A DNA stretch of 64,000 nt from Takakia lepidozioides (Eukaryota > Plantae > Bryophyta). Numbering within the stretch: the stretch's first letter is position 1; each line of letters starts with the position of its first letter. This document shows, one piece after another, positions 1 through 63,257 of this stretch. Below the pieces are notes generated by a model, which was not told the DNA's origin, did no database searches, and worked only from the letters and a program-made list of their open reading frames with translations. Made by a program: the position numbers and the translations under genes. The stretch is from positions 5,022,001-5,086,000 of the forward strand of contig CM060733.1 in assembly GCA_030704615.1 (NCBI GenBank), written 5' to 3'.

Positions 1-385
1 ATCGCATAAGGTTGTCTGTATATAATCTCAACAGATTTGTCACTGGCATGGACCAATTTCGTGCTCTTTCAGTTCTGCACTCTCTTAGGCAATGTGTGAT
101 GGCTGAAGTCGCATCTTTACATGATTTGAGAAGATGCAGACCAATCTCCGGCCTGCATCTTCTGAAATCAACATATCTGGTGCTTATTAGGCTTGGCAAC
201 ACTTTGGCAACACTCCCTATTAGCTGGTGTGCTGAGGCCCTCTTGCAGTCGTTAGCAGCTGCATTGAGCAGTCGAAGTATTTCCTTAGGGCAATCATGTT
301 GTATTACTCATATTTGGGCAAGAAAGTTATTGGAAGTTGAGAAAAAATTGTCCATTGGTGGCTGGCAGAGAGATTGCAGTTGACA

Positions 386-3300
386 ATGCTGCCCTTCAAT
401 AAGAAGCGAGTGTCCGCCACAAGCAATGCCAAAAGCAGCCAAGATGTGTTGCTTCCAGAATGTTTAGATGCAGCTCCGGTCCAAGAGTTGAATTTGGAAT
501 GCACATCAGGCGAAATTACTGAGCTGACAAAGCAGGTATGTGCATTAGTTTTTCCAACATCCTTATGAATTTAGTGGAAACAAACTCAGGCTTAGGGTTG
601 CTCTGTTCACTCCACGATGAAATTGCAGAAAAGGCATGTGCACTCCTGGAAATGCTGCAACATCTTCATTGAAAGGTATGTGAACTTATGGCTGATGTAC
701 ACATGCTGTGATTTAATGGCTGGTGTCCAATGCAAATGCGTTGAGAGTATGTGTATGTGGGAGCTCAAACTTTGCACCATTTTCTTCTTACTGCTGACAA
801 GTTGCTTGTGGCCGGTTCAGGTTTTTGTTGAGGGTACTTTAGATCTTTGCAAGTAGTCTTTCTAATAAGGCTGGTGATGTGCTGCTTGTTCTCTTCATTT
901 TCAATCAATGCACCGTTGTCACTTGAAGACAGTCATTCTAAGCCAACACAGAAGGTCTCTGAAGCAGGTTGAGGCATATACAGGCCAAGTAAAAGATTTG
1001 AAGGGAAGGCTGAGCCGGTTGCAAGACCAGCTCCTCAACGAGAAGATGCATCGATCTGCTATGGAGGAACGTGCAGACACAGCCAAGAAGCATGCTGAGG
1101 GGTTGGAACATCATGCCCGGAATGCTGAAGAGCGAGTCAAAGTTGCACAACACACAGTGGAGACCACCAAGAAGCATGCTGAGGGGTTGGAACATCGTGC
1201 CCAGAATGCTGAAGAGCGAGTCAAAGTTGCACAACACACTGTGGAGACCACCAAGAATCGAACAAGGGATCTAGGAATCTTGTGTGCCTACCAGTCAGTA
1301 AAAGTGGGAGAGTTGGCCAACATGATCAACCTCTTTTTGAAGAAATTAGAGGAGCAGCGCAAAAGTCCTGGTAAACCTGCATCAGAAGTCTGCCAACATC
1401 CACTCCACAACTTGACACATCCCCAAGTTACAACTAATTGTGATGCTGTTAGTGGTGCTGCAACCTTTCAGAGTGCAACTAGCACTCAAGGGGCTGTTCA
1501 ACAGAGTAAAGGAAGCCCCGGTGTCTGTGGAGGTGTCACTCCTCAAAGTGTAAGCAAACCTGAAAGACAGCAAGCACGCATTCGATCCATCTCAACGCAG
1601 GCGGATTTTCCTCCTGGTCCAGTTGGTGATGTAAACCAAGGTCATGTTCGACCTGTCTTGACGCAGGGTGTTATACCCGCTGGTCCAGATAGCTTCTATA
1701 GTCCCAGTGAGGACAAGAGTGGTTCTCCTCCAGGAGGGATGAATTCTCATGATCCTAAGCAAATCAGTTCCCCCAAGAGTAGCCACCAGTCCTCCGGTGC
1801 TCCATCTAGACCTGCCGCCCTGAAAGGCAGTAGCAATAAAATTGTTCATGATCTTCTGAAAGGAATCAACTCCCCAAGGAGTCCCAGTTTGCAATCCCCT
1901 CATGCTCCATGTGGTGGACCTGCTGCCTTGAAAGACTGGGGCTGGAAAACTGCTCTTGATCTTCTGGGGATCAGCTCTCCCAGAAACAGTCCCAATTCCC
2001 AGTCCCCTCATAGACCTGCTGCCCTGAAACAGAGGTGCGGGAAAATTGCTGTCGATTGTCCAAAGGGAATCAGCTCCGCCAGGAGCAGTCCCAGTTGCCA
2101 ATCCCCCGGTGGTCCATTTAGACCTGCCATCCAGGAAGACAAGAGCGGGAAAATTGCTGGTATCAGCTCCCCCAGAAGCACTCCCTGTCTCCTATCCCCT
2201 CGTCCTCCATCTGGACCTACTTCCCAGAAAGATAGGGGCAGGAAAATTGCTCGCGATCCTCCAAAGGTAATAAGCTCGCCCAGACGCAGTCCAAGTCCCC
2301 AATCCCATCAGACTCCATCTAGAGCTTCCTCTACAGTTCCTGCCCTGTCTTTGCCAATCAAAAGTATACTTCGTAGCTCTCCCAGATCCACCTCTCGCTC
2401 ACCTCAGAGCAGATCAAGATCCCAATCCAAAATGTCATTTCATAGTCTTATAGGCACTCCCAAATCTAGATCACCCTCTCCTCAAAGCATTGAAGGTGAG
2501 TCTGTGTCAGGTGGAAGAAAAAGTGGTGCTCATCGACCCACCAGGGGCAGAAGTCGGACTAGGTCTTCTTCCCCTGAAGTGAGGGGCAGAAACAATCGTC
2601 AAACCCCCTCTCATCAAGGCAGGGGTCATGAAATTGTCTTGTATCAATGTTCAAGGGATTCTCCAAAGTCTCCATTGAGATCTCTGTCTCCTGAAGGCAC
2701 AGGTGCTGAACTTGTGTTGTATAAAAGTAAAGTAATAGTTGACTCTCCCATATCTAGTCCTCCCACTCCGTCCCAATCTCCAAGTTCTCAAGTTGCAGGT
2801 CATGAACTCGTAGTGTATGGTCTGAAACCTGTCAAGGGTCTTCCCTCTGGAACATCCTCCCCTCAAGGCAAGGATGGTTCACCAAGCAGTGTGGCCATTT
2901 TGCCTCGATTTGAAAATGAGTTGCAGATGGTCTTGTATCCTTGCTCAGATCAAATTGAACACCCACCAAGAGGTCTTGTTTCTCAACTTGAGAATGTTTC
3001 TGCTGGGGACGGGAACTGTTCAGACTCCAAGCGCATGAGAGTTTCCTCTCCAAGTAGTCCTGGTTCTCAAGCAGCTGAAATCAATATGCTCTTGGCAGAA
3101 AGTCTTTCACATTGGAATAAAACCATTCCACAGCCCAATGCTTCTGCTCTAGAGGTTGCTAGTGCAGTTTCTCGAATTAGAGGAGGTGGTCTTTGGGAAA
3201 ACGTGAAAGACGGCCATGGTGGTGCAAACGCACCAGTTTCAGTAAAGCTGAGATTGAATCCTGTACAGGAGACATTTTTCCAGGAGGTTGAAGGCAAATC

Positions 3301-3835
3301 GGTATTAGAACTGCGGGCGGAGGAACTGAGTAGGAGTTGCACACACCAGGCTAGAAAATTGGCAGAGGTAGCACACCAGTTGAAAATGTTTCCGGTTAGG
3401 CTGGAAGAGCAGCTTAGGCGCTGGGCCGCACTGGAAGCCAAGCACAAATATGAGGATACTCCGCAAGCGAAGGCTCTGGAACAGGTATGTGAGGATGGGG
3501 AAGTTATTTCACCAAGGTCAGGTGATGAGGATACAGATACTACGAGGTCAGTTGGGCAAAGTTCTCCTGCAAAGTACATACTTGCACTTGCAGATCAGCA
3601 CAAGTTTGCCAAAGGATTGAAAGCTGTTACAGATGCAAAGTCAACATTTTTAAGGATGAGGCTTAAAAAGCTAGAGTCGACGTGCAAGTCAATGGGTGAA
3701 ATGGAACATCCACTGGAAGATGAGGTAGCAGTCTGGAGGTTCGGTTCAAGAGTGTTAGTGCAGGCTATCTTGTTTTGCGTTGGCATCAGTAGCTTTCTGG
3801 TCAGATTGACCCCCTTTGTAGCACCTCCAACTTGA
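386..3835 (+). CDS. Coiled-coil, Ser/Pro-rich, C-terminally anchored protein with a plant KASH-like tail (~1005 aa); exons 386-535 and 968-3835
   Basis: Donor CAG|GTATG at 535/536 and acceptor AAGCAG|GTT at 967/968 give a phase-0 join ELTKQ|VEAY, followed by a long open frame. N- and C-terminal heptad regions. Hydrophobic segment VLVQAILFCVGISSFLV followed by RLTPFVAPPT-stop. Start codon is uncertain. Confidence 0.75.
1084..1255 (+). repeat. 84-bp (28-aa, 4-heptad) tandem duplication in the coiled coil
   Basis: KKHAEGLEHxAxNAEERVKVAQHTVETT occurs twice, nearly identical at DNA level. Confidence 0.9.
1760..2340 (+). repeat. Degenerate ~35-39 aa Ser/Pro-rich coding repeats (about 5-6 copies)
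   Basis: Recurrent ISSPRxSPxxQSPxxPxxPAALKxxxGKIAxDxxKG pattern in the translation. Confidence 0.75.
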
Positions 3836-6800
3836 TCCTTTACTGTGGCTGGCTCTTCTTTCAAGGTTGTCAGCTCCTGTTGTTTGACTGCACATTAAAA
3901 GGCTGCTCTGGTTACTAAGAGGCTGTGAAAAGTGGATCCCCCTCATAGTCTCTATGTATCAGTCTTGTAGGAGTGAACTTTGACCGAAATCGGTTGACCA
4001 CCGAAGGTTAAGCTCATGAGAGTCTAGCAGTTGATGCCATATGATCACAGTTTTGTTTCTATGATTTGTTAAACGTGTGGACATAGGTAATGAGATCTCA
4101 TCTGTCTGCCTGTCTCCATGTATACGTAGTAATTTTGTGTCAAGTGCAGTGCAATTGAGAGTAATGCGCTTAAAACCTACGAGTAGTGTGCTTCTGTATT
4201 CCTGAAGACATTGGTGATGGACATATGGATGACTCGTTAAGGTCTCACTTTATCCTATTATCTCCTCGTGGACTAGCAGGAAGGTGCTAGTCCTTCAGCA
4301 AGAATCACACCAATTACACATTTATTAACCGCGTCCATATTTTGGGATGTGTGAATGAGAGTTGAACACTTGCCCTCGGCACCATAAGCTGAGACCTGTG
4401 CGGATCCTGTTGCAGTACTACTGCTCATCTTGAGAGTGGCTAATGAAACAGCTGCATAGCATGGATTGAGCACACTTGAGTGCAGGGTCTAGAGAATGTA
4501 CTCATAAGACGTTGTTTGCCGTAGCCTTGTGGCCATTGACCCCGTGCCCAGTTTGAGTGGAACACAAAGGGTCAGAACCTACCTCTGTCAGGGGCTGATG
4601 TCGGTAGTAAGACTTACCTTGAAATAAACAACTGATCCGGGTTTTCCAGATATCCTCTAGAAATCCCTTCACACAAGCATCAATCTGCTGTGTGTGGTTT
4701 GCCCAATAACTAGGCCCCAAAAGGGCCTGGGCTTTTGGCTCAGCCTTGAGACTTTCAAAGTTGGTAAACAGAGGTACAGGCACAATTCCCTTGATAGATT
4801 TGAGGAGAGTGTCTCTCTGGTGAGAGAACCCCGGACAGTGAGTCAGAAAATGAATATTGTCTTCAGGTTGCCCACACAACAGGCAATTGGACTCTCCCTT
4901 TCCTCTCTGCTTCTGTTTGCTGTTCAAAGGTAGGCTTCCCGCCCCGAGTTTAAATTTCAGTCTAGTGCTGAGAGTGGGTAGACCCTTGAGGTCATCCATG
5001 ATGTCCTCCCCCATGTCACAGACTGGAACAAGTTCAGGGAAGTTTTCTGCCTAACTTCATTTTCATCAGACAATTTCCTGGCAACAGTCATGGCTTTGGA
5101 CACTAATGCCTCTAAGTCAGATTTATCCAGCAGGGTCAAGACTCGCGGATTAAGATTCAGATCTTTGAGATCTCTTCTACTCTCTTCTGCCAGGACTTAG
5201 CCTGTTTGACAGGGCGGTCCTGTTTCCAAGATATAGAGTCGATCAACTTAGGATATCTGGTGTTGGACATATGTTGCAGCTGACCCCACCATCTAACCTT
5301 GAATTCATCTCGTCGGGAGCTTAAGGACCGGATGCCAAACTCACCCCGAACAGCCACATTGGCTGTTTTGGAGCAATGCTGACATGCACTCCTTAAGCAC
5401 TCCCACTTGAATGGATTCTAAGGACTTAGCCTGGTTGGAGTTATCAACCCATATTGCAGATCCGTACTCCAAGGCAGGTCTAATAACGCGACAAAGCATG
5501 GTTTTCTTAACCTCAGAGTTGACCCCTCTGCAGTGGAAAAATTTAGTGAGACCCAGCGCTTTGCCCTTGCCAGTTTGAACAACTTTCCGAATATGTGCAT
5601 CCCAATTACAGTTGGAGGAAAACTGAACGCCCAGGTAAGTGTAGGAAGGGAGGACCGGAATCTCTTGGCTACCCCACTGCCACTTGAGATCCTCCCTCTC
5701 CTCTGTGGTTGAATGCCACCACTGCACATTTACTGACGTTAGCCTCTAGCCCTCAAAGATCAAAGTATCTCTTCGCGCAATCAATCAACTCCTGGAGGTT
5801 GGAAGGAGTCTCCCCTATGCCTGCGAAGTCATCCGCAAACATAAGGGCTGGTATGGTGGTATCAACCACCCTTAACCCAAATCCCTCACTTTCCTCATCC
5901 TCGAGGAGTTGATTGATGAAAACATTGAAGAGCAGAGGGGAGAGAGTACATCCTTGAGCTACACCTTGGTCTATGTCAAAGAAGTTGGACTTCTGTCCAT
6001 TAACAGTGACACAGCTTTTGGTGTGAGCATACAAGTTATGGACAACTCTCCACACCTTTCCCTTGATCCCACAAGACCAGAGGCGGAGCCATAGACCATC
6101 TCTCCACACTGTGTCATAAGCTTTTTTGACATCCAAGAAAAAAACATAAGTGGGTTTCCCTTCTTTTTCCTTCCCTGGATAATCTGGCTTAGAGTGAAGA
6201 TATGGTCCACACAGCCCCTGTTTCGCCGAAAGCCAGCTTGGCCTTCATGGAAACAACCTCTAGATTCCAGATCAACCTCGAGACGAGTACTTATAACTCT
6301 GCAAAATATCTTGCCAACAGCATTGAGGAGCGTGATGCCACGGTAGTTCCCCGGTTCTTCTCTGTCACCCTTCTTGTATAGATTGACAATGACCCCCTTT
6401 CGCCAGCGAAAGGGGATCATTTCAGTCTTCCAGATAAGGTTAAAGAGGAGGAAGGGCCTCTTACATGGGGTCGCCACCGTGCTTGATAAGCTCGTTGACT
6501 ATGCCATCAGGTCCACCTGCTTTATATCCATTTAAATGTTCAATTGCTTCCACAATCTCAGAAGAACTAATGGGAGCGTTGTACGCCTTTGAAATATACT
6601 CCAGTTCATCAGGGCTGTTTTGAATCATAGGAACCAACTGTGTCCTTCCATTCATCAGAGGATCCCTCACTGTTAGACCTAGAAGTTCTGCCAAGGATAC
6701 TGTAGTGGGTTTCAAAGGTTTTGACAATGTCAACCGATAAAGTCACCACTGCACCCTTAGTAGTCTTCAGCGCTTGTACTTGCTGACAGCTTTTTGGCTT

Positions 6801-6953
6801 GTACAAATGTTGAAGGGCCAACCAGAATCTCGTCATTACTACCATGGTGGTTTGAGTTTATTTCACTGTATAACTTGACCCAGTATAATTTCTTCTGAGA
6901 CCTTACAAGCTGATTGATATCTTTACGGATCTGGTAGTACCTCGCCCACAATT

Positions 6954-7063
6954 TTTTTTTAAATAATAATAAAGGGGATGAAGCCCATTTATTTTATTCA
7001 ACGTGGGGAAAAAATAAACCCTTGTGGGGCCATGAAGCATGCACACCAGACGGTGAGGGACGA
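6954..7063 (-). mobile_element. 110-bp poly(A)-tailed retro-insertion (5'-truncated L1 or SINE) nested in the RTE-like LINE
   Basis: TSD CCACAATT at 6946-6953 and 7064-7071; T-run at the left end; removing it restores the reading ...KTNKELWARYYQ. Confidence 0.75.
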
Positions 7064-8260
7064 CCACAATTCTTTGTTGGTTTTCAAATTGCAGCACTCT
7101 TTATAGAGGACTCGTCTCTCAGCTATCTTGAGTTTAATCTCATTGCTCCAACAGCTCTACTGCAGACAATTAGTTTCCTCCCAATGATCTTGTCAGCCAC
7201 AGAGGAGACGATACTTCCCAAGAATCCACTGCTCTTTCGACTTCATTTCTTGCATTGTTAGAGCGAGACTGAAGGTCTTGGAGGGAGTGGACAAAATGAG
7301 GGAGAGCCACAAGGCCTGGACATACTCAGCCTTGACCTCTTCATTATGGAATTTTTCTATGCGCCACTTCCGAATCGAACGTTTCACAGATCTCTTGGTG
7401 TTGGGAAAACACCTTTTGATCTCAGTCCAAACCAGGAAGTGGTTAGAGGTACCAATATCAGTTCTGTCGATCAACACATTGGCACTCTGGGGAAACAAAT
7501 TTTTGTGTGTTATGATATAATCCACAATGGTACGTTCCCCAGTTTGGGTTTTCTCACGAGTCTACTGCACTTGGTCACCTTTTGTCCTATTATTCAAGGT
7601 CAAAAGCTGAAGCTCTTCCAGACAGTTAATTAATCGTCTACCATTAGAATTCAGCTCGTCCTCACCAAAAGGCCCAATGATATCATCCTGATGGAGACCT
7701 TTGCCCACCCGGGCATTGAAGTCACCCAATAAAACCACCTGACCTTTGGCAAGGAATGAAGCACAGTCCAGCTTTACATCTTCGAAGGCTTTGTCAGCGT
7801 CAGCACTAAGGGTCCCTCTGTGGGCATGTAAACACAACCCACAAAGAGGTCCTTCGTACTCACGCCGCCCTTCAGTTTCAGTTTTAGCCTGATACTGTGC
7901 TCATACCTCAAACCCTTGTTGATAATTTCACAATTGTCAAACAAGAGATCACGGACAAAGAATCCAACCCCTTTTTGACCGTGTTTGGCAGAGGCTGCCT
8001 TGAGAGTACACATCTTACCCATCCATTTATAACCATTGACATCTCCAACCAATTATCCGGTGTTTCCCATGTCTCTTGCCCAGCACAGATGTGAATGTCA
8101 TTAGCCCGAAGAACTTGTCCCACTTCGAGTTGTTTCCTTTGGTTAGTCAGCCCTGAGAAGTTGAAAGTTCCAGCCGCAAGCCAGCCCTTTGCATGTGAAT
8201 TGTTTGTCGTCTAGGTAGCTTATGATTGCTCCTGGATGGCCAACCGTTCTGCAAAGGGGG

Positions 8261-8543
8261 GACAGTTACCCCGTGTGTAGATTTTGCTGGTCTTGTGTAA
8301 ACTTTGAGGATTGGTAAACCATTCAGAGTACCAAATCCTTCAGTTACACAACGTTCAGGCTCCGCACACTTAGGGACAGATTGTCCGTCTGATTGCTTGG
8401 GGACAATTACCCCGTGTATAGATTTTTGCTGGTCTTGTGTAAACTTTGAGCATTCGTAAACCATTCAGAGTACCAAATCCTTCAGATACACGACGTTCAG
8501 GTTCTGTATACTTAGGGGCAGATTGCTCGTCTGGCTGCTTGGG
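8261..8543. repeat. ~141-bp tandem duplication in the 5' part of the LINE
   Basis: Two diverged copies starting GACAGTTACCCCGTG (8261) and GACAATTACCCCGTG (8402). Confidence 0.85.
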
Positions 8544-10027
8544 TTCAACCTCATCCAGAGCATCAAACCGATTAGAAACTCTCAAGTTGAAGTCCCTGCC
8601 CTTGGTTGTCTTCCTAGAGCGCCCCATTGAATCACCAATGTCTAAGACCGCTCTCCAGCCAGTCAAGGGACGAAATTCTTTGAGATTGAATTGATGTGAG
8701 ATTCTATTTTAAGCATTTTTGGGCATTGCAACCTTCAAAGTACCCCTGTTATCAAGTCTCGAGATGGAACCATTAGCCATGAAATCCAAGCCTAAGCTAG
8801 AGCATGTAGTTTTAAAGGACACATCGTCCATCCTGGGATTCACCCCAAAAACTACACATGAAGCCCTAGATTTGGCATAAGTAACCAATTCCCAGGAATC
8901 ACCCTGGGGAGTGTTGTTGTTGATAAGAGGTAAAGTATTGATTGATTTCGCAGGCTATAAGTTTAAGCACAAGGACCAACCCTAGCCCAAGTGCTGAGTA
9001 TGCTAGACAGAGCATACGACTGCCCAATTTGGGCGGAGGGGCTGCCCCCAGGCGGTAGGGTTCCGCTTCTTACCATTCAGAGATCACCACTCCAAAGGAG
9101 CTGCAGGGAGTGGCCCGTGTAGGTCTAAAGAGGGAAAGGCCCCAAACTTTCCAACTAAATCCAATGCACTACCTTACCTGGAGCAAAGCGCTTCAGGTGA
9201 AAACAAACAAAGACACGAGGTCACAAGGTCTAGAGAATGGAAGATGAAGTCCCACACCCACCCAAGGCCATGCAGCCATACACACCTTGATCTAAGTAGG
9301 TGAAGAAATAAAATCTTGGTCCATCACCTTGGATGGTCAAGAGCTTACTCTAAAGTGTATGGATATAGTGTTCCATGCCAAGTTTTATGTATGCATGCAG
9401 AGGTCTGTGATCAAAACTCTTTGAGCTGATAAATCAGCAATCTTTTCTTTCAAGTTAGATGGGCTTTTAAGTGCTTGCTTGTCATGTACTTGTTATTGCG
9501 TGCTTGCGAACATGCAGGAGTGCCAGTCTTGGGATAATTATTTGCCTGAACAACAAAGAAGAGTTTCTCTACAGTATTGAGATACTCTTGCGCCTAAACA
9601 GTACCAAATCTCAGTTTTAGATTAAGTCCTTATCATTCATTCCGAGCTTATTTTGGTTCCAGTCTGACAAGTAACATTGCAGAGTAATATCAGTTTCATG
9701 GGAATGGAGTGACACTGCACAGCTGCTGATGAGAAGGCCACCCCAAGGGCGAATGCGACTCACTCGTTGGGAGGTGGGTGTTCGATTCATGCGAATTCAC
9801 TGAAAGTACTTGAAAAAACAATGATCAGCATATCCTTTCTACATGTTACAAAGGATTTCAACCCATGACCCTCTGGGGGAGTAGCAACCCAGTCGCTCCT
9901 GTATCAATGACATTGACCTTGGGGTTTGCGCACAATGATGAATTGGAAGTTGGAAAAATACCAGAAAAGAGTTTGTTTTGATGCATGTGGCAAAAGCTAG
10001 GCTTAACACTACTCTTGGATACCTGGT

Positions 10028-11267
10028 TTAAGTGGGAAGAAGGGTGCTGACAATCTCCGGATCCCTACCAAAAACAACACACACTGCAAGGCATATCAAT
10101 GCAGCTTGGACCACTGTAAGAAGCCCGTATCTCCACGCCGATTCTCGATGCTGACAAACCTTTTGAAAAGTCTTAACTGAGTCACACATCACCTCTAGCT
10201 GTTTCACCTGCATCCCCCCGAGTGTTTAGATGACATTTTCATTCCCCTTTCTTGCCAATGCCTTGACACTTATAAGAGGTTCTTATATGGCAAGAGGTAG
10301 AGAAGAGAGACTGATAGTGAAAGGCAACATTGAATACTCAAATGGACTCCTTCCTCAGATTGGGGTTCTTATTTATGAGTTGGAGAGAAAATTCTCCATA
10401 CATGGTGACGGACCTGCGCCTTCAAGGATTCAATGCGGCCTTCAGCCACGCCGCGCCAGCGCTTGGCCTCACGTAGCTGGCTGACAAGCTGATACTCTTG
10501 GGGGTCCAGCATCCCGCTCATTGTACCTTTCTCTCTATTACTCCCTTGTGTGTATCCCTGTGCGACTGTCTCACTTAAGACAGCCAGGCGTGCACCAAAC
10601 TTGGCCCGCTCCTGCTGCTCTCCGTCCAGTTTTGCCCGCAGCTCCGCTCTGTGCCTATGCTCGTGAAGAGACAATGCAGAATCATACAAAGTACGAGCAT
10701 CAATGTTATGGGAAAGGTATGTACACTCCATTGAAGCTTTCCAAACGTGACATGTATAGAAGCGCATGGGCAACCAGTTAGTACCTTTGTGCTTCTATCA
10801 ACTCGTGTGACAAGTTCTCCCGCAAATCGTGTGCTTGTTGCTCTGCACATATCCGTCTGTCCTCCTCGAGCTGCAAACTTTGTTGCATGGAGTCCAGCCG
10901 CTCCCTCAACTCCATCACTTGGTTGGCATACAGGTCCACCTGCATCCGTGCCGAAGCTGCAGCCAGTGAGTATGCAGCAAACCCGAGTATGAGTACAGGG
11001 CTCCTAGCCAAAACATAGCCTCCACTTCACTCTATACTATCGTCTCTATCTCAAAATTAGAGTGGAAAGAACACTAACTTGCTTGATTAGCTCATCCGGT
11101 GTCCGCATACTAGGAGTGTCTGGAGATCTTGGTTGCTTGTCCTTCTGTGCCCAGTGTGCCCGACCAGTTGGCCCCTGCCTTATCGTGTTGTTCTGGAAGT
11201 TGTTTTCTGGGAAGCCTAAGCTATTAACCTTAAATCCCACCTCCGATACCAGACTTTGCACTCCCAT
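10028..11267 (-). CDS. Short coiled-coil tail-anchored protein with a plant KASH-like tail (~254 aa), paralog of 386-3835; exons 11267-11079, 10939-10785, 10654-10414, 10207-10028
   Basis: Three GT-AG introns with phases 0/2/0 join the ORF pieces in frame (765 nt total). ELIKQ|VDLY matches ELTKQ|VEAY of the first gene. C-terminus WRYGLLTVVQAALICLAVCVVFG-RDPEIVSTLLPT-stop. Confidence 0.75.
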
Positions 11268-14200
11268 GTTTTCGTCCCTTGCACCTGGCAGGCGCAGTAC
11301 CTCTGTGCACAAACAACAGTGCCACTCTTTAGCAATGCCAATCCGTCCATGTTTGCAACTTATAGCACACGGAGAAAGGAGTTTGTGGAGCTTCTTAAAT
11401 ACCCTACACGTAGATTTTAGATTTCATGATTCACATGTGGTCTGAGGAGGAGAATTTCATGCACTCAAACAATAACACCATTACAGACAGCAGGGCACTT
11501 GCCTTTGCATATGTGAGTGTGGATGGGGGCCAAAAGCCAGGCTTTCATGGAGGCAGAGAAGAGGTGGTCAGGGCGGATCTTGTGTGGACCTACATTGAAC
11601 CCATTGTCACGCTCCTGCCGGTCCTCCAGCAAAACATGATCAGTCCCTCGGATATTGGGGCTGTGAAAGCCTTCACCCTCATGCTGCTTGGGTGTGAGAA
11701 ACAGGTGGCCACCCCCAAACATTTTGAATTTCTCACAGAGATACCTAGGGATTGAAAAGTTGCAGGCATTCAAATATGCCACTGCTTTTTCTATGTTATA
11801 AGACTCCATCTACCAGTGCCTTGAATCTCACAGTTGGGGGCCTCCATGGTCTGCAAGCCTGCTGGAGATGACCATTCACTTCGAGTTGTTGTCTATCAGC
11901 CAAATGTTATTATATGGAGGGATCTGAAGCAGGTGAACCCTCCCACTCATGGGCTTCACCCTAATGAAAATATGTATGCTTTGAAGGGTATACCATGTGA
12001 AGACGGAGTTCTCTGATACTGCACCATCTTAATTTGGTTGCATTTGAAGATGGAGCCATTTGTACACAGCAAATGGGATCAGTAGAGGCTTCAGAAGTGG
12101 CAAACAGAATTGCAGGTGAGTACTTTGAAGTTCTTCCCAGCAAACTTAATGAGCAGATTACTTCTTACACTGTAATGATGTCAATATCCTCTGATTGAGA
12201 TTGAATTTTGAATAGAATCTCGTGAAGAGTTTCAATTCACACGATGCAAACCGCATCTTCAAATGGAAACAAAATAGTGGGTAGTTCACGGCGCTTGTTT
12301 GATGCGGACTGTGAATGATATATTCTTCTTTAGGGCAACATGTCCAACTGGAAACCCAGTTCCTAGGCCTCACAGGATCTCCTGTTGTACTCTTGTCAAT
12401 GCCAATGTTATGGGCATTTACTGTTCAAGATACTGTTAGTTTGTCGCCAGAATTTTGTTGTTTGTCAAAACAAAACCTTGCTTCCATGATTCACCCTTTC
12501 CAATGTTCAACCTTCATTGCAGGAATGACGCATAGCAACACCGAGCAACTTTCCATAAATCATAAATGGTAGATGAGTGAGAAGCCGGTGAGTAGAACTC
12601 TCCTTTCCAATTGTGTGCATGAGGGGTTTCAATATAACTGATCTTTCAATGGCCTCTGAACATACATTCCACAGCTTTGACGTCTGCTCCGCAGCTAACA
12701 CACGGAATTAGTGAAATCTAAGGTAACCTGACTAATTGTTCTTGAGACTTGTAAGCCATCTCATTGGGGAAATCTTATCAGGAGATGAAAGAGTGGATGA
12801 CCGGGTTCCACACGCTTAGTGCGAGAGAGGGCTACGGGGACACGAGCCCGCGAGCATCTCGCAGGCAGAGCGATGGCTGACGGTTTTTCGTGCCCTCTCG
12901 CAAATGCATCTGTTTTTTTGTTTTTTTTCATCTGTATTTTCCCTTCAAAGGTGACATCTACGGACATCGATCATTTTCTTCAAAGGTCTATTCATCCTCG
13001 CCTCCGTAACTAGTCGAGTGTACAGTACTCACCTCTTGATGTAGTCCGATGGACCAGAGTGCAAGTCGGATCACGCTTACAATGCGAGACAGAATCTAGA
13101 GTATGCGAAAGAGAAAGGACGGGGTGCATCTCGAGATGTGGCATCAACAGTGCTTGAAGGAGCATCATATGGGCTTTGACCATGAATGAGCTCGAAGCCA
13201 TCATATCACTTCATATCATCATTGCCACATCTCTTTTCTATCCGAAGACCTCCAACAAGCCGGGAAAAAGCTGAAACATGGGCGGATGGGTTTGCGGTGA
13301 CGGTTCCCGTGCACCTTGCACCGGACCTCCTGCAGGCTCTTTCAATCTGTGGCAATAGACATGGCAAAGCGTTTTACGCTGTCCCCCATTTCGAGACTAG
13401 CACCAATATGGTGGACCGATGCATAAAACGCCTCGCCATGCAGATGGTTGAAAAACCCCCACCTGCCTGAGAGCTTCAACAGGGCTCTTGGGCCACGATA
13501 GATCTCTGCAGCACGGAGAGGATCGAGGTACAAGGCAGGCCTTTCTACGCCGCCTTTCATTCAAGTGGTAGAGCTAGAGCGAAGGAAAACGTGGAACGAC
13601 TCACCTGACACCGAGCAACTCGATGTCTACAGATCCTTGATGCTCTTGAAGCCCATAATATGCTTGACCTCCACATCTTTTTTGGAAAATGCGGCACAGT
13701 ACCAGGCAAGGCATTCTACAACGCCCCCTGATCTGGATCTACGGGACACCGTAGGACGCTACGCCAGGCTAAAAGCGTTACTAAGATTGCAATGTCCTCA
13801 GTGCCCAGAATGTAGAGCAGCTTCAGCTCCGTTGTGAATGGCTAGGGACCTACCACTTCTGTCAGCCTCTCGGAAGGGGCTTCTACTCTATTATTCTAGC
13901 GCTGAAAATGATATCAGGGCTCTTAATAAGTTCAACACAAGGAAGTCCAGATGCAGGGTTCATCTATTTCCTTCGTCTACTGATTGGGGTCACAAGGGAG
14001 GTGTGACTTGTGACCAAGAGTGATAGCACTGCCTTTCTTTCCTGGGAACTAAGTTACTTACGTTCTCTTCTAGAAATATGAGCTTTTTTTGGAGCTTACA
14101 TTGGCTCCATAAATGTTTCTGATCAGGTGGTTTCTGAACCTCTCAGTATTGATATACATTGACGTACAACTCGTTCATTTCAAGGCCCATGAGCGCAGAA

Positions 14201-18654: not shown

Positions 18655-20992
18655 ATCTTAGTCCAGGGTATGCACGGCAGGGACGTGGGATGGAGGATTT
18701 GGAGACCTATGGGCAAATGATGGGGGAAGCACATCGTGTTTGTGTGCATTTGCAATGCTTGTGCAAGCCTGGCAGCCCTGGAGAAGGGCAAGAGGTGCAT
18801 GGGGATATCAAAGCTGGAATTGTGCCAAATGTCAATCTGAACACTGCCCTGGCAGTTTTGGAAAAGGGGAAAGAGGTCCATGGCGTCATCTTCAGAGCTG
18901 GAATTGTATCAAATGTCATTCTGAACAATACCCTGGTGAACATGTTTGCAAAATGTGGGTGCATCTAGGATGCAAAGGGAGTGTTTGACACTATGGCTGA
19001 ACGAGATGTGGTGTTGTGGAGTGCGATGCTTGCAAGGTATGCACGGCAGGGACGTGGGATGGAGGCTTTAGAGAGCTATGAGCATATGATGGGGGAAGCA
19101 CATCATGTTTGTGTGCATTTGCAATGCTTGTGCAAGCCTGGCAGCCCTGGAGAAGGGCAAGAGGTGCATAGGGATATCATCAAAGCTGGAATTGTGCCAA
19201 ATGTCAATCGAACACTGCCCTGGCAGCTTTGGAAATGGGGAAAGAGGTGCATGGCGACATCTTCAGAGCTGGAATTGTACCAGATGACAATCTGAACAAT
19301 ACCCTGGTGGACATGTTTGCAAAATGTAGGTGCATCTAGGATGCAAAGGGAGTGTTCGACACTATGGCTGAACAACATGTGGTGTCGTGGAGTGCGATAT
19401 GATGTGCTTGTAGGGTATGCACAGCAGGGATGTGGAATGGAGGCTTTGGAGAGCTATGAGCAAATGATGGGGGAAGCACATCATGTTTGTGTGCATTTGC
19501 AATGCTTGTGCAAGCCTGGCAGCCGGCCTGGAGAAGGGCAAAGAGGTGCATGGGGATATCATCAAAGCTGGAATTGTACCAAATGTGAATCTGAACACTG
19601 CCCTGGCAGCTCTGGAAAAGGGGAAAGAGGTCCATGGCGACATCTTCAGAGCTGGAATTGTACCAAATGTTAGTCTGAACCATACCCTGGTGGACATGTA
19701 TGCGAAATGTGGGTGCATCGAGCCTGGACGAGGGCAAAGAGGTGCATGGGGTATCATCAAAGCTGGAATTGTACCAAATGTCAGTATGAACACTGCCCTG
19801 GCAGCTCTGGAAAAAGGGGAAAGAGGTCCATGGCGACATCTTCAGAGCTGGAATTGTACCAAATGTCATTCTGAACCATACCCTGGTGGACATTTATGCA
19901 AAATGTGGGTGCATCGAGCCTGGACAAGGGCAAAGCGGTGCATGGGGTATCATCAAAGCTGGAATTGTACCAAATGTCATTATGAACACTGCCCTGGCAG
20001 CTCTGGAAAAAGGGGAAAGAGGTCCATGGCGACATCTTCAGAGCTGGAATTGTACCAAATGTCATTCTGAACTATACCCTGGTGGACATGTTTGCAAAAT
20101 GTGGGTGCAAAGGGATCTAGGATCTAGGATGCAAAGGGAGTGTTCGACACTATGGCTGAACGAGATGTGGTGTCGTGGAGTGCGATGCTGGTCCAGGGTA
20201 TGCACGACAGGGACGTGGGATGGAGGCTTTGGAGACCTATGAGCAAAGGATGGGGAAGCTCATCATGTTTGTGTGCATTTGCTTGTGCAAGCCTGACAGC
20301 CGGCCTGGAGAAGGGCAAGAGGTGCATGGGGATATCATCAAAGTTGGAATTGTGCCAAATGTCAATCTGAACACTGCCCTGGCAGCTTAGGGGAAAGAGG
20401 TGCATGGCGACATCTTCAGAGTTATTATTGGACCAGATGTCACTCTGAACAAAACCCTGGTGAACATGTTTGCAAAATGTGGGTGCATCTAGGATGCAAA
20501 GGGAGTGTTCGACACTATGGCTGAACGAGATGTGGTGTCGTGGAGTGCGATGCTTGCATGGTATGCACGGCAGGGACGTGGGATGGAGGCTTTGGAGAGC
20601 TATGAGCAAATGATGGGGGAAGCACATCATGTTTGTGTGCATTTGCAATGCTTGTGCAAGCCTGGCAGTCGGCCTAGAGAAGGGCAAGAGGTGCATGGGG
20701 ATATCATCAAAGCTGGAATTGTGCCAAATGTCAATCTGAACACTGCCCTGGCAGCTTAGGGGAAAGAGGTCCATGGCGACATCTTCAAAGTTGGAATTGT
20801 ACCAGATGTCATCCTGAACAAAACCCTGGTGAACATGTTTGCAAAATGTGGGTGCATCTAGGATGCAAAGGGAGTGTTCGACACAATGGTTGAACGACAG
20901 GTGGTGTTGTGGAGTGCGATGCTTGCATGGTATGCACGGCAGGGACGTGGGATGGAGGCTTTGGAGAGCTATGAGCAAATGATGGGGGAAGG
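18655..20992 (+). pseudogene. Tandemly amplified, frameshifted PLS-class PPR array
   Basis: Repeated FDTMAERDVVSWSAML.YA.QG.G.EAL / ACASLAA.LEKGKEVHGDIIKAG / NTLVDMYAKCG motifs; ~370-bp period with internal sub-duplications; stops and frameshifts. Confidence 0.9.
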
Positions 20993-21025
20993 GGGGCACC
21001 TTCTTCAATAACACAATGGCTACGA

Positions 21026-21246
21026 GTGGGTAGATGGTCAACTGGAAACAACAATGGCAGCAGCACAATTGATAGAACAAGGCCCACTGCTAATGAAGAT
21101 ACCTTCTTCAACATATTTCACCCTGAATTCCCCTGCTATCAGAGTCGTCCCTAAGTATCCAAAAACAGGTAACAGATATGAGAAGAAGCTGTGGGATGAA
21201 TACTTTTCTGACCCCAGTAACTGGTGGGACAACCGAGGCAAAAAGG
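21026..21246 (+). pseudogene. Fragment with an OSB/PTAC9-type PDF-motif start
   Basis: EWVDGQLE...EKKLWDEYFSDPSNWWDNRGKK followed by a possible donor AAG|GTGAAT. Confidence 0.65.
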
Positions 21247-21320: not shown

Positions 21321-21559
21321 GCAATTGCACTCTCCCTTTCCTCTCTGCTTCTGTTTGCTATTCAAAGGTAGGATTCCTGCCCTTAGTTTAAATTTCAGTC
21401 TGGTGCCGAGAGTGGGTAGACCCTTGAGGTCATCCATGATGTCCTCCCCCATGTCACAGACTGGAAACAAGTCCAGGGAAGTTTTCTGCCTAACTTCATT
21501 TTCATCAGACAATTTTCTGGAAACGGACATGGCTTTGGACACTACAGCCTCTAAGTCAG
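21321..21559 (-). mobile_element. Internal fragment of the RTE-like LINE family (homologous to 4883-5120)
   Basis: Direct alignment by eye; MGEDIMDDLKGLPTL.TRLKFKL is shared. Confidence 0.9.
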
Positions 21560-23722: not shown

Positions 23723-24802
23723 ATTTCGTTCGCCCGGGCATAGACATTGTTGGCAGTGAGAAGAAGGCAGGAAAGCAGTTCAGTGTTTCTAGCATGCATG
23801 TGGAGACGTCGTGTAGAAGTTAGGCTCAAACTTTTATCATGGCTAGATTTTGTTGACAGTATTCCAACACTTAACTCTCTGGGATTCTAGTCTATTTTGT
23901 GGAGCTTAAATCCCCAATGGTACTTCTTTCACTACACTAGTGGTATGTGTTCCTCTAGTCATGATTATAATCACTTGCACATCATTGTAATAGTGGTATA
24001 ATTTAAAACCGTGGGAGTAGCCAAATGCACACAATCGCCTACATTACCACTTGTTTAGTGGTATAAGTAGTCACATATATAATACTGTACTAGTGGTATG
24101 AATTCCTCCAGTGGTATTCCTAATCACTTACACACCACTCTGTTAGTAATCACTCCAATCCATAGTTCCCACTCAGAGAGACACCATGAATGACTCAAAT
24201 AGCTTACGCACCACTCTGTGGGTAATCCTTCCAATGACCTGTTGAGAGACATCATCCACTCACATAACCACTCTGTGAGTGATATTGTATATTCTCCGTT
24301 TTCATAGAATGACTCTATGAGTCATTTTGTGATCACTCAACAAGTGGTTTCGGAAGTCATTGAATTTCACTCCATCCATTTTGTAGCACTGACACACGAC
24401 ACGTGTCCATGCTGAGAGTGTCGCCACGTGTCGACACAATCTCCAATATCATCCACGGACCACCGGTTTACACGTCTCCACTACAAAACGGAAGTGGTTA
24501 CTTTACCACTATGACACGTCAGTTTACCACTGTGACACGTCATAAGTGGTTGGTTTACCTTAGTGACACGTCATTGACATGTCACAGTGGTTAATTTACC
24601 ACTGTGACACGTCAGCTAACAGGTGGACCCGGACGTGAGTGGTTCGAACCACTGTCCTTAACCACCAGTGCCACGTAATGTCTTTTACCACTCACTTGTC
24701 CTAATGGGTTCTTTATCACTCTGAGGCCAGAGTGGTTTAGTGTCTTTTACCACTCAAAATGAGTGGTTAACAGAGTGGTTATTCCGCGTTTTTCTTCTAG
24801 TG

Positions 24803-27800
24803 TGAATGATTGATGGACAACCCATTGAATTTCCATTCCCTGCGGTGGCATGGGGTTGGCCTTTCCAAGCATATCCAGCACCCTGATATGATATAGGTTC
24901 CGCTTGTCCAACGTTATTTCACCAGAGAATGCGAGGTTGCCAACATTGTCTGGTATGAACCCCAATCCTGTGGCCTCCATGTCATGAATTGCCAAAATCA
25001 GAGCCACTGTTACATGATTGCATTGATCCGATGCCATCCAGGCAGGGAGAGTGCAATTGTCCCTGGTCTCATCCAGTAGTGGGAGCATGAACTGAGGGAT
25101 CTGTGAGATGATTGTGTTCCAGGCTTTTGACCTTCTTTTCCCCACTATTCCAACAATGTCTTCCTCTTGAAGGAAATGTCCCTCAGATCTGGTGCTTGCA
25201 ATGTGCGTAAAACCTTGTCCCTCCCAGAAGGCCCATGTGGGGGTTTGCCTTAGCAAGGAATCGGAGTCCATGTTATAATTGAGAAATAGTGGTTGTCGCA
25301 GGCATTCCTGCAACATTGTAGGCATTTTCTAGAAAAGATTACCTCTGAGCGTGTGCCAGGCTCTCCAGATTGATTACCAAGGTTTGGAGCCTAACCCAAC
25401 ATTCGCGTTTCTGCCCTACACTATCCTTCTCAGCGAGAAAGCCCAAAGGGGGGAGGATGTGGGTGTAGCTCCCATGAGGTATGGTTAAATTAGCTTGCTC
25501 CATGGGCTGTTGTAGTGCTTGATCGTTCTAGGCACCCACTTTGCCAGTAAGGCCTTAATCTGTGATCCGGGGTCTATAATACCCAATCCCCCCTGGCTTT
25601 TCTTTTGGCACAACTGGTCCCAAGAGACAAGGGCTCATCTGATTGGAGTCGATGGGGTGGCTCCCCAAATAAAGTTACGTATGAGCGCTTTGATTTCCTT
25701 GACGAGCACTGGTCCTGGATCCCAGACTGTAGAATAGAACCAGGATGTCGATAGCAGCACTTGATTTGCCACCAAGGCCCTTCCCACGATGGATAGCATA
25801 ATAGAGCTCCAATATGCCAATTTTGCTTTGAGCTTTTGTATGACCCCTTTCATGATGGTTTGCAGTGTGAGTTTTAGCCCCATCTGGAGGCCCAACATCA
25901 TATGACTTTCACCCTCCCTGAGCCATTTTAATCCAATGTCATGACCCCATGGTTGGTAGTGAGCGGCAAGACCTCCATTCTGCAGTAGTGACAAAATTCC
26001 CACTGACTTGTTCCAATTGACCTTCAAGCCTGTTCCCAAGCAGAAAGTGTGAAGGGATTGCAGTGCTCTGTCAATGTTGCCTTTTGACGAGTTGTCGAGC
26101 AGCATGGTTGTGTCATCTACGTACATGGATATCTTGAGCATTTTGGGGCGGTAAGTTGGGAGGTGCAACCCAACAATGTCTGGCATGTGGTCCAGAAGGT
26201 GTCCGAGCGAGTTTGCAGCAATGAGGAAAAGGAAGGGTGCCAAGGGGCACCCTTGCCTCCCAGATCTTGAAATTGGGAAGGAACCAGAGATGACCCCATT
26301 GATCATCACTCTGCTTGAGGCTGAGTGAAGAAGGATGTGAACCCAGGTAAGGAAAGGCCCACCTAGCCCTATCTTTTCTAGAGCTTGAAGCAAGAATGTC
26401 CAATCGATGGAATCAAATGCCTTTTCGAAGTCCAACATAAGGAAGGCCAGTGGTTGATTGTTTACCTCAGCTCTGTGGAGTGCCTCATGAGCCAGCAATA
26501 TATTATCAAGGATCATCCTGTCTTGTAAAAACCTGTTTGATCCTGCCTGATGATGCTGGAGAGGAGAGGTTGCAACCTGAGAGCCAGTGCCTTGGCTATT
26601 ATCTTGTAGGTGGAGTTTAGGCGAGTGATCGGTCTATAGTTGGCCATGTTATCCCTTTCTCCTTTCTTAAAGATGACAGTAATGAGGCCTTCTGAGATCT
26701 GGGAGGGCATCAACTTTTTGTCGAGGATGTCATTGGCCATTAGGATGAATTCATCATCAATTGTGCTCCACAATGCCTTGAACAATTCTATGGGGAGCCC
26801 GTCTAACCCAGGTGATTTTATTGACGCCATTGACTGCACTGCCAAGCCCAGCTCTTCCACTGTAAAAGGAGAAGCCAACGCTGTTTTGACCCATTATGAT
26901 ACCAGGCATGGAATATGTTGTATGAGTGTAGCTCTAGCCTGGTCTTTTTCCTGTGAGGGTTGCTGTTGACAAAACAACCTCTGAAAATAATTTGCAGCAT
27001 GGATTTTGGGTTGTCAACCAGCAATCCTGAGGTTGGATCTTTCAGCGCAGGTACCAGCGTGGCGTTTCTCCTTTGAGCTGCTTTGACAAAGAAATACCTC
27101 GTCATTTTTTCCCCTTTCAATGACCAATTGACCCCCGCCTTGACTCTCATAAACTGTTCTTTTGTGTGCTGAAGTAGGGAGAGATTTCTTTTCGCCGTTT
27201 TGTAAGATAGCAGAGTTTGGGGGCCTTCACGCCCTGATTGTCGTTGAAACTGGCAAACCTTCAAGCACCTAATCAGTGCTTTCTGCCTCTGGGATTTTTC
27301 TTCCGCCTTCTTCCTTGATATTTGCTGACAAGCGATTCTGAGCATGGTGAGTTTTGCCAGGAAGCGCAAAGTGGGTGAAATGTGGGGCGACACTGCAGAG
27401 GACCACGTATTTTGAAGATCTTGGATGACCTATGGATCCTTGAGGATGGATGGGTTCAATTTAAAGAAGCCCCTCCCCCGCACCCTGGAGCCCGGTGCAT
27501 TGAGCTGTAGCTGAATTGCGGCGTGATCAAACCCTGGCTGAATCGGCTCAATTTGAATTCTCTTGGACCAGCCAATGAGGGAGGTTGTGCAGTAAAACCT
27601 GTCCAGGCGGGCCTGGCATAAATTTGGTGGCACCCTGTTATTGGACCAGGTGAACTTAAGCTCCCCAATACTAGGGGCGGTTGCATCCAACAAACCAACA
27701 GTCAAACAGAGAGAGTCCCATGCATCTGTTTCTGCAGGTGAGAGACCGTGAGCAGACTGACCATCTACTTCATGCTCTACCATATTAAAATCGCCCCCCA

Positions 27801-27990
27801 CAATCCAGTGCTGGATTAGTGGGTGCTGAAGCATTTTGTCCTTGATTTGATTCAGAGAAGCACTCTTTCATCCTCCTCATTAGGGGCATAGATGTTCAAA
27901 AGACCCACACTGCCCAGAGATTGACCCATGTTCTAAACCAGAAATTGGACACGACCTTGGACCCAAACATCATTAGAAAGGACAGACTGT
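24803..27990 (-). mobile_element. L1-clade LINE ORF2 (APE-RT), degenerate; 5' continuation of 14586-15922
   Basis: LLNIYAPN, WIVGGDFN, ARLDRFY, KSPGLDGLP, NYRPIT.LN, DQTGF, LDFEKAFDSIDW, RQGCPLAPFLF, YVDDT, LKVNWNKS. Confidence 0.92.
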
Positions 27991-27991
27991 G

Positions 27992-30900
27992 TCAGGTAGA
28001 GGCGGAAGATGAGATGATGCGGAGCTAGCCACATCAGCCCGATGCAAAATAGATATGGCTTGTTTTCTCTACAAAGTAACTGAAACACGTTGTCGATAGT
28101 AGGCGACAAGGACGGAGGCATGTGGGATGCCAGTGGACCCGCTCTTGGCTGCATGATGTGCACATGTCTGCAAGAAATCGTCGAAGTGCCGGTGCAATGA
28201 ACCAAATATCTCGACCCCCACTGGAAGAAATGTGTCGGTGGGGTGACGATCGTTGTAGTCGCGCTCCTTGGCCTGGGCTGCTATAATGGTTGTCGTGCCT
28301 GTTGTGGTAGCTGTGAGATAGCAGATTCGCTCGAGTGGGCTCGGCGAGAACGACATCTGCTAGGGTACGCAAACCATCTCTAGATAGGACGATGTCAACA
28401 CGGCGCCGTATAGAGTGGGACGTGAGCGTGGGTCGTAGATGTGGTTGCTCACGCAGTACATGATACCCTGCCTCCCGAGCAATAGATGTCACCGCATCGC
28501 GAACCATATCATGAGACGCAGTGCGCTCACCACCACATGGACAACGGAGGAGATGGATGACAAGGTCATCGATGGGCTAAAGACAGACGCAGCGCTGAAG
28601 GCCCAATGCCGAAGGATGAGGCAAACCGAGTCGCGTAGTAATGAAAATAGGGGATGAGAGGCGAAAGGTTGCGATAGTGGGTCGTGCTACCAACCATCCC
28701 CCTGCTCCGGGTCTTGCGCATGATAGAAGTTGGGCTCGATGCAACTCAGAAGAAGCACTTGAGAGCATGTCGGAAAATGAATGACGGTGCACGCGCTCGA
28801 AAATGGACTCCTGAAGATGGTCGAGGCCTTGAGCAACCAACTGCTCAAATGGTGGTAGACATGCTCGCGCCGGTGCCGGAAGAAGATCTCGTGCAGAGCA
28901 GAGATACTCACTACAGCAAATGCGGGGGGTTTGCGACACCAGCCGCGCCCCCACGCCCCGCGCGGCGCTGACCCTGCGACGCCGAGCCTGCGGCGTTTGT
29001 TTGCGACGCCTCGGCGTCACAATCCCCCGTTGCGACACCATTACGACGCCCAGCCGTCGTAAGGTGGCATGAAGGGGGAAAAATGGCCCTCGCTTCGACG
29101 GTTTTTTTTTCTTGCGACGCCCCGGCGTCGGAAATCCTATATATATATATTTTGGACGTTGCGACACCTCGGCGTCGCAAAAGCGTCACTACGGGCGCCC
29201 CAGCGCCTCTGCGACGCCAGGGCGTCACAACAGCATCACCATAGTGAGAGTTTGTTTTTTTTTTTTTTTTTTTTTTTGACTTTGCGGCGGGGGCGCCCCG
29301 CGCTGGGACGCCCCGCGCTGGGACGCCCAACGTTGCGACGCCAAGGGTCGTAATGGCGTCGCCACATGGGGTCGCAATGGTGTTGTTGTCAGCTTAGGTC
29401 ATCACAAGGACGTCGCTTAGGGCGTCTGGCGGTGGGGGGTGCAACAATGGCGACGATGCTGGGGCTGGGCACTAAGGCTGTGGAGGTTGCAACTCCCCGA
29501 CGTCACAAGAGAGACCCCTTTAGAAGGAACTTGAAGGCTCTTGAAGGAAATCTTTATATGTGTATATATATATTTAGATTGTTTTTGTGATACATAGATG
29601 TAACATAGGTGTGTTGGTTAGTTTGTAGTGTCTTAGAAATGTTATAATGTGGAGGTCTTAGGTTCAAGTATGCATTGCATTGCATGATGTATGTAGAACA
29701 ATGAATATATCGCCATTAGAGAGAACCGGAGTCAATGGTCAACGCCGGAGTCAATGGTCAATAAGTTTTTGAAATTCAAGTTTCAAATTCAAATTTTCCC
29801 GCCTAAATTCAAATGTACCCCCTTAAATTGTGACGTTCGGGGGTCGCAAAGTGCGACCCCAGGACGGTACTAATTCTGCATTGCAGAGAAGGTTTTTTTG
29901 TTTTTTTTGTTTTTTTTTCCTTTCTTTGACGCCCGGGCATTGCAAATCGCGGTTTCGCCTATTTGCGACCCCCATTGGTCGCAAATTTGTGACGTTTTTT
30001 TGGCGACGCCCTTGCGACGCCCGGACGTCGCAAATTTGAGTTTTTCCCCCTGCCTGAAAAGGGCTGTTTTACGACGCCGCGGCGTGGCTGCGGCGTCGCA
30101 AACCCCCCCCTTTTCCTGTAGTGGCTGCTGGAAGGGTAAAATGCCACTGTCGACATGTGTTATGGCGTCCATAAGGATGGGACGATGGTCATAGAGAAAT
30201 CGTGAAGCGAGGGTTGGCGCCACCAACGCCCAACTGCCGAGGAAAGCTGACGGGGCGGTAGTGACAGTGGACAAAAGACCCACACCGCCGGAAGAGACGG
30301 GCAGGGTGGCTTGCTGTCGTGGCAAAAGTCCCTGAGCATCCTCCAAAGCTCCTGGTCCTAACAATCTCCCGAAGGTAGTCATCATGGTAGTATCAAACCC
30401 AGATAAGAGGTGTAGGAAATCTGGGCTGGGTGGAACAATGCGCAAGAAATATGAGGGACGCTGAAGGAAACATTTGGTCAAGATTCCATATGCTACCTAT
30501 ACATCTCCGAGCCTAGGAAGGAGATCGGCGTGGGTGACATCCTGGTGGAGTGCATCTTCCAAGAATGACTTTGTGAACTAGGTGGTGCCAAAAGGGACTC
30601 CCAGGATTATGATGCCATTGGGCGAAGCAATGAAGTGAGCAGGGAGGACAAAATTTGCAGGGAGACCGGATGGAGACCACATCGCACATTTGCGAGGTTG
30701 CACTGAAAGGCCCACGGCAGAGAGTTGGGTGACAAAATGATGGTAAGCTGAAAGTACTTGTGAGGCAGGGCCTACAATGTGCGTGTCGTCTGCCACCGAC
30801 GGAAAAAGACAAGATGAGTGTACTTGTGCTGAAGCCGTCAGGGCGCGGACATGAACCATGACAAACAAAGGTCCTCCTAAAGGGTCGCTTTGGCGGGTCC

Positions 30901-32367: not shown

Positions 32368-32370
32368 GTA

Positions 32371-32466
32371 CTATGGAATGGGCCCGGTAGGGCCCGTTCC
32401 ACCTAGGAATCTGGCGAGCCTGCGTTCCGGTAGGGTGGAACGGGCACCACCGGACCTGTTCCAGAG
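32371..32466. mobile_element. 96-bp fold-back MITE-like element
   Basis: ~40-bp imperfect inverted arms (CTATGGAATGGGCCCGG... / ...CCGGACCTGTTCCAGAG) flanked by CGTA direct repeats. Confidence 0.6.
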
Positions 32467-63209: not shown

Positions 63210-63257
63210 GGGGTCAATGGCCACAAGGCTACGGCAAACAACGTCTTATGAGTACAT
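63210..63257 (+). mobile_element. 48-bp extreme 3' end of the RTE-like LINE
   Basis: Identical to the reverse complement of 4496-4543; flanked by CTTTTTTGATG direct repeats (63200-63210 and 63260-63270). Confidence 0.88.

Follow-up and report, generated by a model that had tools for sequence, protein, structure and literature searches.

Two convergent genes near the start of a 64,000-nucleotide stretch of the Takakia lepidozioides genome (assembly GCA_030704615.1, contig CM060733.1, positions 5,022,001 to 5,086,000 of the forward strand; hereafter the window, with coordinates counted from its first base) were found to belong to a previously undescribed bryophyte family. Gene 1 (forward strand) is the long paralog and gene 2 (reverse strand) the short one, and the two are intact, selected, ancient paralogs. 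Judged from their sequences, members of the family are tail-anchored coiled-coil proteins that most likely act as KASH proteins, and the pair probably represents a new bryophyte KASH family resembling WIP proteins in layout only. An initial annotation, prepared from the letters of the window alone, had described the pair as a WIP-like KASH family. Of that description, paralogy and KASH-type anatomy are supported, and the long-gene family has kept a terminal Pro-Thr, as a KASH assignment predicts; the comparison with WIP holds as an architectural analogy only.

Paralogy and age of the gene pair

Local alignment of the gene 1 and gene 2 products gave a score of 125 vs. 40 ± 6 for shuffled sequences, with 0 of 1000 shuffles reaching 125. 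The last 110 residues alone scored 98 vs. 25 ± 4, and the N-terminal coils 85 vs. 34 ± 6. When profiles of the long and short subfamilies were compared, the last 82 columns were homologous (E = 3.6e-9), and the first coil gave a weaker match (E = 9e-4). A phase-0 intron follows EL.KQ at the same position in both window genes and in the Sphagnum orthologs of both. Paralogy and a shared intron, both proposed in the initial annotation, were upheld by these results.

No similarity between gene 1 and gene 2 was found at the DNA level, which makes the duplication an old one. A tree built from the C-terminal block grouped each window gene with its own Sphagnum orthologs (split support 100/100; long branches), and the duplication therefore predates the split from Sphagnum. 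A recent tandem duplication was excluded on these two counts. Over the conserved parts, the nonsynonymous divergence (dN) from Sphagnum was 0.27–0.39 and the synonymous divergence (dS) ranged from 1.2 to saturated. An artefact or pseudogene was excluded by the open frames, the conserved introns and a dN far below dS. The convergent, tail-to-tail arrangement seen in the window has not been kept in Sphagnum tenellum, whose two genes fall on separate chromosome records (OZ234851.1 and OZ234854.1). Beyond the genes themselves, no synteny was detected with Sphagnum.

Orthologs and distribution

Databases were searched with the window exons one by one, and with Sphagnum proteins as full-length proxies. 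Word-index searches covered candidates of 154–490, 165–525 and 525–1670 residues, and one unindexed single-exon search was added. The unindexed search returned two clusters of gene 2 orthologs, both Sphagnum-type. Annotated gene 2 orthologs of 400–406 aa, labelled hypothetical or unnamed, exist in S. troendelagicum, S. jensenii, S. fallax and S. magellanicum and also in S. tenellum, whose model is partial (280 aa). A query consisting of the final 216 residues encoded by the large gene 1 exon identified orthologs in Sphagnum and in two further lineages at 40–47% identity, the Sphagnum long proteins being annotated at 1284–1289 aa, also as hypothetical or unnamed. All long-gene orthologs share one layout, consisting of a coil, a long low-complexity spacer, a second coil, a juxtamembrane helix, a hydrophobic segment and a tail. 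With members in Sphagnum and two further lineages, the family is not specific to this genome. The products of gene 1 and gene 2 themselves did not come up in the protein searches, and neither did that of an ordinary gene of the window, so their absence is no evidence that the pair is unannotated in this genome, as the initial annotation had thought probable.

A metagenome scan recovered Sphagnum-type loci only. One Sphagnum metagenome contig (L005, 8365–10300) carries a decayed second short-gene copy, with stops and no last exon nearby. At the sensitivity of these searches, no match was obtained among named proteins of Physcomitrium, Ceratodon, Marchantia or vascular plants, the long-gene first coil and first exon not having been searched alone. 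Pfam searches with every exon and with full-length orthologs gave nothing above cut-off, the only matches being sub-threshold coiled-coil ones, and PDB sequence searches with C-terminal and N-terminal profiles gave nothing significant. Foldseek, run with the short-protein model, returned generic long helices only (best E = 0.67). No paper on the gene family was found in the literature, the unverified families in the supplement of PMC4050730 lying outside the search.

C-terminal anchor and tail

Hydrophobic segments were located by 19-residue Kyte-Doolittle hydropathy. Each window protein has one clearly hydrophobic segment, and in both it is C-terminal (2.15 for gene 1 and 2.59 for gene 2, vs. 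a maximum of 1.03 elsewhere). In gene 1 the predicted transmembrane (TM) helix (3752–3802, +) is followed by a tail of about 10 residues ending in APPT and the stop codon (3803–3835, +), which is the putative KASH peptide. In gene 2 the TM helix (10123–10070, −) and a 13-residue tail ending in LLPT before the stop (10069–10031, −) both lie in exon 5. A C-terminal hydrophobic helix with a short tail of this kind had been described for both genes in the initial annotation, and this was confirmed.

Under the DORY definition, plant KASH proteins have a single TM helix directly before the tail, a tail of 9–40 residues and a terminal XXPT that most members of the family keep, and five predicted proteins from four families were confirmed when tested (Zhou et al., PMC4050730). 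All three features are present in both window proteins, and both also fit the refined pattern [DTVAMPLIFY][VAPIL]PT, which none of the orthologs does. Plant KASH tails span 9–13 aa, a range that takes in both window tails, and the SUN pocket has been modelled as conserved between plants and animals (PMC13200780). The penultimate Pro is the most conserved KASH residue.

Because the terminal motif had been named before any ortholog was known, the orthologs offered a genuine test of the KASH assignment. Thr at position −1 and Pro at position −2 were found in all four long-gene lineages, while positions −3 to −15 contained no invariant column (13% mean pairwise identity). The codons at the terminus vary among these lineages (three Pro codons, all four Thr codons and two stops), and selection acts on the last two tail residues of the long-gene family. 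Terminal PT is present in all complete members of the long subfamily, in which a single annotated model is truncated. Short-subfamily members differ, with PT in the window and PS in Sphagnum. The juxtamembrane Trp lies 33–38 residues from the C-terminus in 12 of 12 proteins, both subfamilies included. A structure model of the Sphagnum short protein contains helices at residues 199–293 and 315–391, which run through the membrane segment, followed by an extended, unstructured tail, and its N-terminal half is of low confidence and mostly unstructured. As a prediction, the model fits a tail-anchored coiled-coil protein and is silent on the partner.

Several results weigh against a KASH function. 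No ortholog fits the refined pattern, the long genes ending in SFPT, PSPT, LSPT and PGPT, and the Sphagnum short genes all end in LLPS, with Ser in place of Thr. The recent plant KASH consensus is (V/I)PT (PMC13200780). The TM helix is weak in several long-gene orthologs (hydropathy 1.06–1.75), with an Arg within it in Sphagnum, and no relative of known function was found by protein, profile, Pfam, PDB or Foldseek searches. Such endings nevertheless have precedents: PSPT figures among the rare KASH endings of animals, and the plant KASH protein TIK ends in PPPS (PMC7746251).

Given these departures, the proteins could instead be tail-anchored coiled-coil tethers of the endoplasmic reticulum (ER), Golgi or other endomembranes (golgin-like or WIT-like), with Pro-Thr/Ser serving another luminal partner, insertion or sorting. 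A coiled coil with a C-terminal anchor is a generic layout, the orthologous tails miss the plant KASH consensus, the short subfamily has exchanged Thr for Ser, and maize has PT-ending proteins of uncertain status with respect to LINC, the complex that links nucleoskeleton and cytoskeleton. Only the last two residues are kept, however, the rest of the tail being free to vary, and their spacing from the membrane is fixed; this is the pattern of a pocket binding a free C-terminus, for which SUN is the established plant receptor. An endomembrane tether was considered unlikely, though likelier than the other alternatives.

A variant of the KASH assignment would restrict it to the long gene, the short gene having drifted to a WIT-like partner that reaches the envelope by pairing its coil with that of the long protein. 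The replacement of Thr by Ser in every Sphagnum short gene points this way, and the homologous coils could heterodimerise. The short gene nevertheless keeps Leu-Leu-Pro in both lineages, has the stronger TM helix and in the window fits the refined pattern, and the variant was regarded as quite improbable. Outer-membrane bridges of plastids, mitochondria or peroxisomes, modelled on the bridge proteins PDV1/PDV2 and PMD1 and with C-terminal residues binding a partner in the intermembrane space, were given marginally less weight again: the long-subfamily anchors are moderately hydrophobic, as is typical of non-ER tail anchors, but the tails have at most one basic residue and that of gene 2 is net acidic, whereas typical mitochondrial or peroxisomal anchors differ in this respect. 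PDV tails terminate in Gly and not in Pro-Thr, and there was no Pfam match to such families.

Proposed mode of action

If the proteins are KASH proteins, the C-terminal helix would enter the ER or outer nuclear membrane and leave the tail projecting into the perinuclear space. There its penultimate Pro and the carboxylate of the terminal Thr or Ser would dock in the pocket of an inner-membrane SUN trimer, holding the protein at the nucleus. The coils would dimerise and bring in a motor adaptor, a cytoskeletal protein or a similar partner. In the long paralog the coil module appears to have been duplicated and a long, disordered and probably phosphorylated spacer placed between the copies, which would lengthen the tether and make it more flexible. 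The original duplication may have left the tail-to-tail position behind as a relic, and the proposed function would not need it.

By analogy, the long paralog might be the plant counterpart of an extended nesprin, that is, a SUN-anchored tether of about 1100–1300 aa with two coil modules and a phospho-regulated spacer, connecting the moss nucleus to microtubules or a microtubule-organising centre. Cleavage at RIRGG by a deubiquitinase would leave a membrane stub built like the short paralog and so switch the tether off. This extended proposal is speculative, and its probability was put very low.

Structure of gene 1

Gene 1 had initially been modelled as 386–535 plus 968–3835 (+), giving 1005 aa, and gene 2 as 11267–11079, 10939–10785, 10654–10414 and 10207–10028 (−), giving 254 aa. 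Neither model contains internal stops and the introns of both are GT-AG; to this extent the exon models stood, but both proved to be incomplete at the 5' end. In gene 1 the splice acceptor AG is at 367–368, and the ATG at 386 sits inside an exon. The first exon within the window is 369–535 (+), with the same G|AG phase-1 junction as in S. tenellum, and residues 95–168 of the Sphagnum long protein align to window positions 359–547. Since the acceptor matches the Sphagnum junction, gene 1 probably begins before base 1; its true first exon is probably upstream of the window and its full product probably near 1100 aa.

The first exon of the Sphagnum long gene has about 97 codons, is 65% identical to that of another lineage and is absent from the window. 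In the contigs carrying it (L013, 1595–1879; L016, 10001–10290) this exon encodes three conserved V-P-I/V-K repeats followed by E-I, with no Pfam or PDB match, and an AlphaFold model of it had a predicted local distance difference test score (pLDDT) of 43. Two overlapping antisense open reading frames (ORFs), 2–290 (−; about 96 codons) and 12–383 (+; about 123 codons), are located upstream of gene 1, in its would-be first intron, and Pfam gave nothing above noise for either.

A phase-0 GT-AG intron (536–967, +), at the position common to gene 2, separates the first exon in the window from the last exon (968–3835, +; 955 codons and a stop), for which the orthologs were found. Coil module 1 (968–1370, +) is about 60–65% identical to the orthologs over aligned codons and holds a recent 84-nt tandem duplication at 1083–1257. 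It is followed by a Ser/Pro-rich low-complexity spacer (1371–3172, +) of about 600 aa with 19% Ser, which is poorly conserved and of similar length in all orthologs. Ser-Pro dipeptides number 32 in the gene 1 spacer and 11–13 in those of the orthologs, and the spacer may be regulated by phosphorylation. It also contains four short hydrophobic motifs, each ending in Tyr (2627–2938, +), of the E-L/I-V-L/V-Y type; there are likewise four in one ortholog (P0080), and one or none in the others, and they are possibly a linear binding motif.

The motif RIRGGG (3173–3190, +) stands shortly before coil module 2. It is RI[RK]GGG in three other orthologs and RIKCGG in one, at a locus that looks frameshifted, and it has been kept although the spacers have otherwise diverged. 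The motif resembles the C-terminus of ubiquitin (RLRGG). Coil module 2 (3245–3454, +) is homologous to coil module 1 (hhalign E = 9e-6), which indicates an internal duplication. The juxtamembrane helix (3587–3751, +) ends in a conserved W-R-x-G motif common to gene 2.

Structure of gene 2

The corrected gene 2 has five exons, starts at 11809 and encodes 368 aa. Exon 1 (11503–11809, −) matches Sphagnum residues 17–115 (E = 6e-5 to 6e-4), and the Sphagnum short genes have the same introns as gene 2 and an extra first exon matching this window ORF (11809–11503). The first intron (11502–11303, −) is 200 nt long, phase 1 and GC-AG, with a GT-AG intron at the same position in Sphagnum. Exon 2 (11079–11302, −) begins after the acceptor at 11303, and the ATG at 11267 is internal to it. 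Exon 3 (10785–10939, −) carries the coil module, exon 4 (10414–10654, −) coiled coil, and exon 5 (10028–10207, −; about 60% identity to Sphagnum) the juxtamembrane helix, TM helix, tail and stop. The corrected product aligned without a break to an intron-free (spliced) Sphagnum contig (L009) at 43% identity over residues 19–368.

Retrotransposon and other features of the window

Between the two 3' ends lies a non-LTR retrotransposon (long interspersed nuclear element, LINE; 4499–9223, −) encoding an endonuclease and a reverse transcriptase, broken by many stops and frameshifts. It is flanked by a 16-bp target-site duplication (4483–4498 and 9224–9239), 15 of 16 positions being identical. The initial annotation had placed a LINE here and estimated that the stop codons would otherwise be about 1.5 kb apart; the endonuclease and reverse transcriptase fragments and the target duplication substantiate the first claim, and the computed distance of 1451 bp agrees with the second. 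A functional role for the LINE was rejected, and the element would be a later passenger. A 142-bp tandem duplication is present inside it at 8258–8543, and it ends without a poly(A), a few bases past its own stop codon. Three short stretches from this LINE family occur at 21321–21559, 42501–42557 and 63210–63254, the last being a 45-nt copy of the LINE 3' end with an apparent target duplication of its own, in agreement with the element boundary.

From the ORF list, degenerate, frameshifted PPR-like repeats were noted at 19300–21100 and further retroelement fragments at 24700–27900 (−) and 29800–32400 (−). At 35135–36796 (+) an F-box protein is encoded that has a coil at its N-terminus and a kelch-like propeller; a stop near 36445 apparently interrupts it. 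Ordinary plant genes comprise a KUP/HAK-type potassium transporter (47900–52575, +), a family-4 glycosyltransferase (54007–55572, −) and a ribosomal protein L11-like gene (61799 onward, +).

Significance and comparison with known systems

Among KASH families, SINE1/2 alone has been recognised in moss and Selaginella (PMC7746247). If the assignment is correct, mosses would have a second family besides it, with candidates now supplied, and coil-type KASH proteins would exist outside flowering plants. The long paralog would be about twice as large as SINE1. The tail pattern used in genome screens would also have to be widened, as endings of the xSPT, xFPT and LLPS types would all have been missed. 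The significance is tempered by the fact that lineage-specific KASH families are expected in plants and that no ortholog turned up in Physcomitrium, the model moss.

Plant KASH proteins are not findable by homology (PMC7746247). The window family shares with the angiosperm KASH proteins WIP1-3/MLKP a cytoplasmic coiled coil, one C-terminal membrane helix and a short PT-ending tail. It differs in that WIPs end in (V/I)PT, whereas the endings here are APPT and LLPT, with SFPT, PSPT and LLPS among the orthologs, and in two further respects, its W-R-x-G motif next to the membrane and the presence of a long paralog whose coil is duplicated and which carries a 600-aa spacer. WIPs have been reported from flowering plants only (PMC13200780). 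None of the searches returned a WIP, SINE or seed-plant protein; for WIP this covers a profile search whose length range takes in the WIPs and the unindexed exon search, a direct profile comparison with WIP not being included.

SINE1/2/MLKS resemble the family in having a membrane helix and a tail of about 13 aa that ends in PT, and in occurring in mosses. The SINEs, however, begin with an ARM-repeat domain and carry an acidic/aromatic patch in the tail; neither an ARM domain nor any other Pfam domain was found in the window exons or full-length orthologs, and for lack of an ARM domain the genes are not SINE1/2. With SINE3, SINE4, SINE5, TIK and MLKG the family has in common a narrow distribution, a unique cytoplasmic part and recognition by the tail alone, and the TIK ending parallels the PS ending of the Sphagnum short gene; no shared sequence was detected, and those families are limited to Brassicaceae, Medicago or grasses. 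WIT1/2/MLKT are likewise tail-anchored coiled-coil proteins, the WITs being in the outer nuclear membrane, but WITs are without a PT-ending tail and no sequence link to them was found. The animal giant nesprins/ANC-1 offer the parallel of long and short KASH proteins side by side, the long one being an extended tether, although the bryophyte long paralog is about 1100–1300 aa vs. thousands, is built from coils and a disordered spacer vs. spectrin repeats, and has no actin-binding CH domain.

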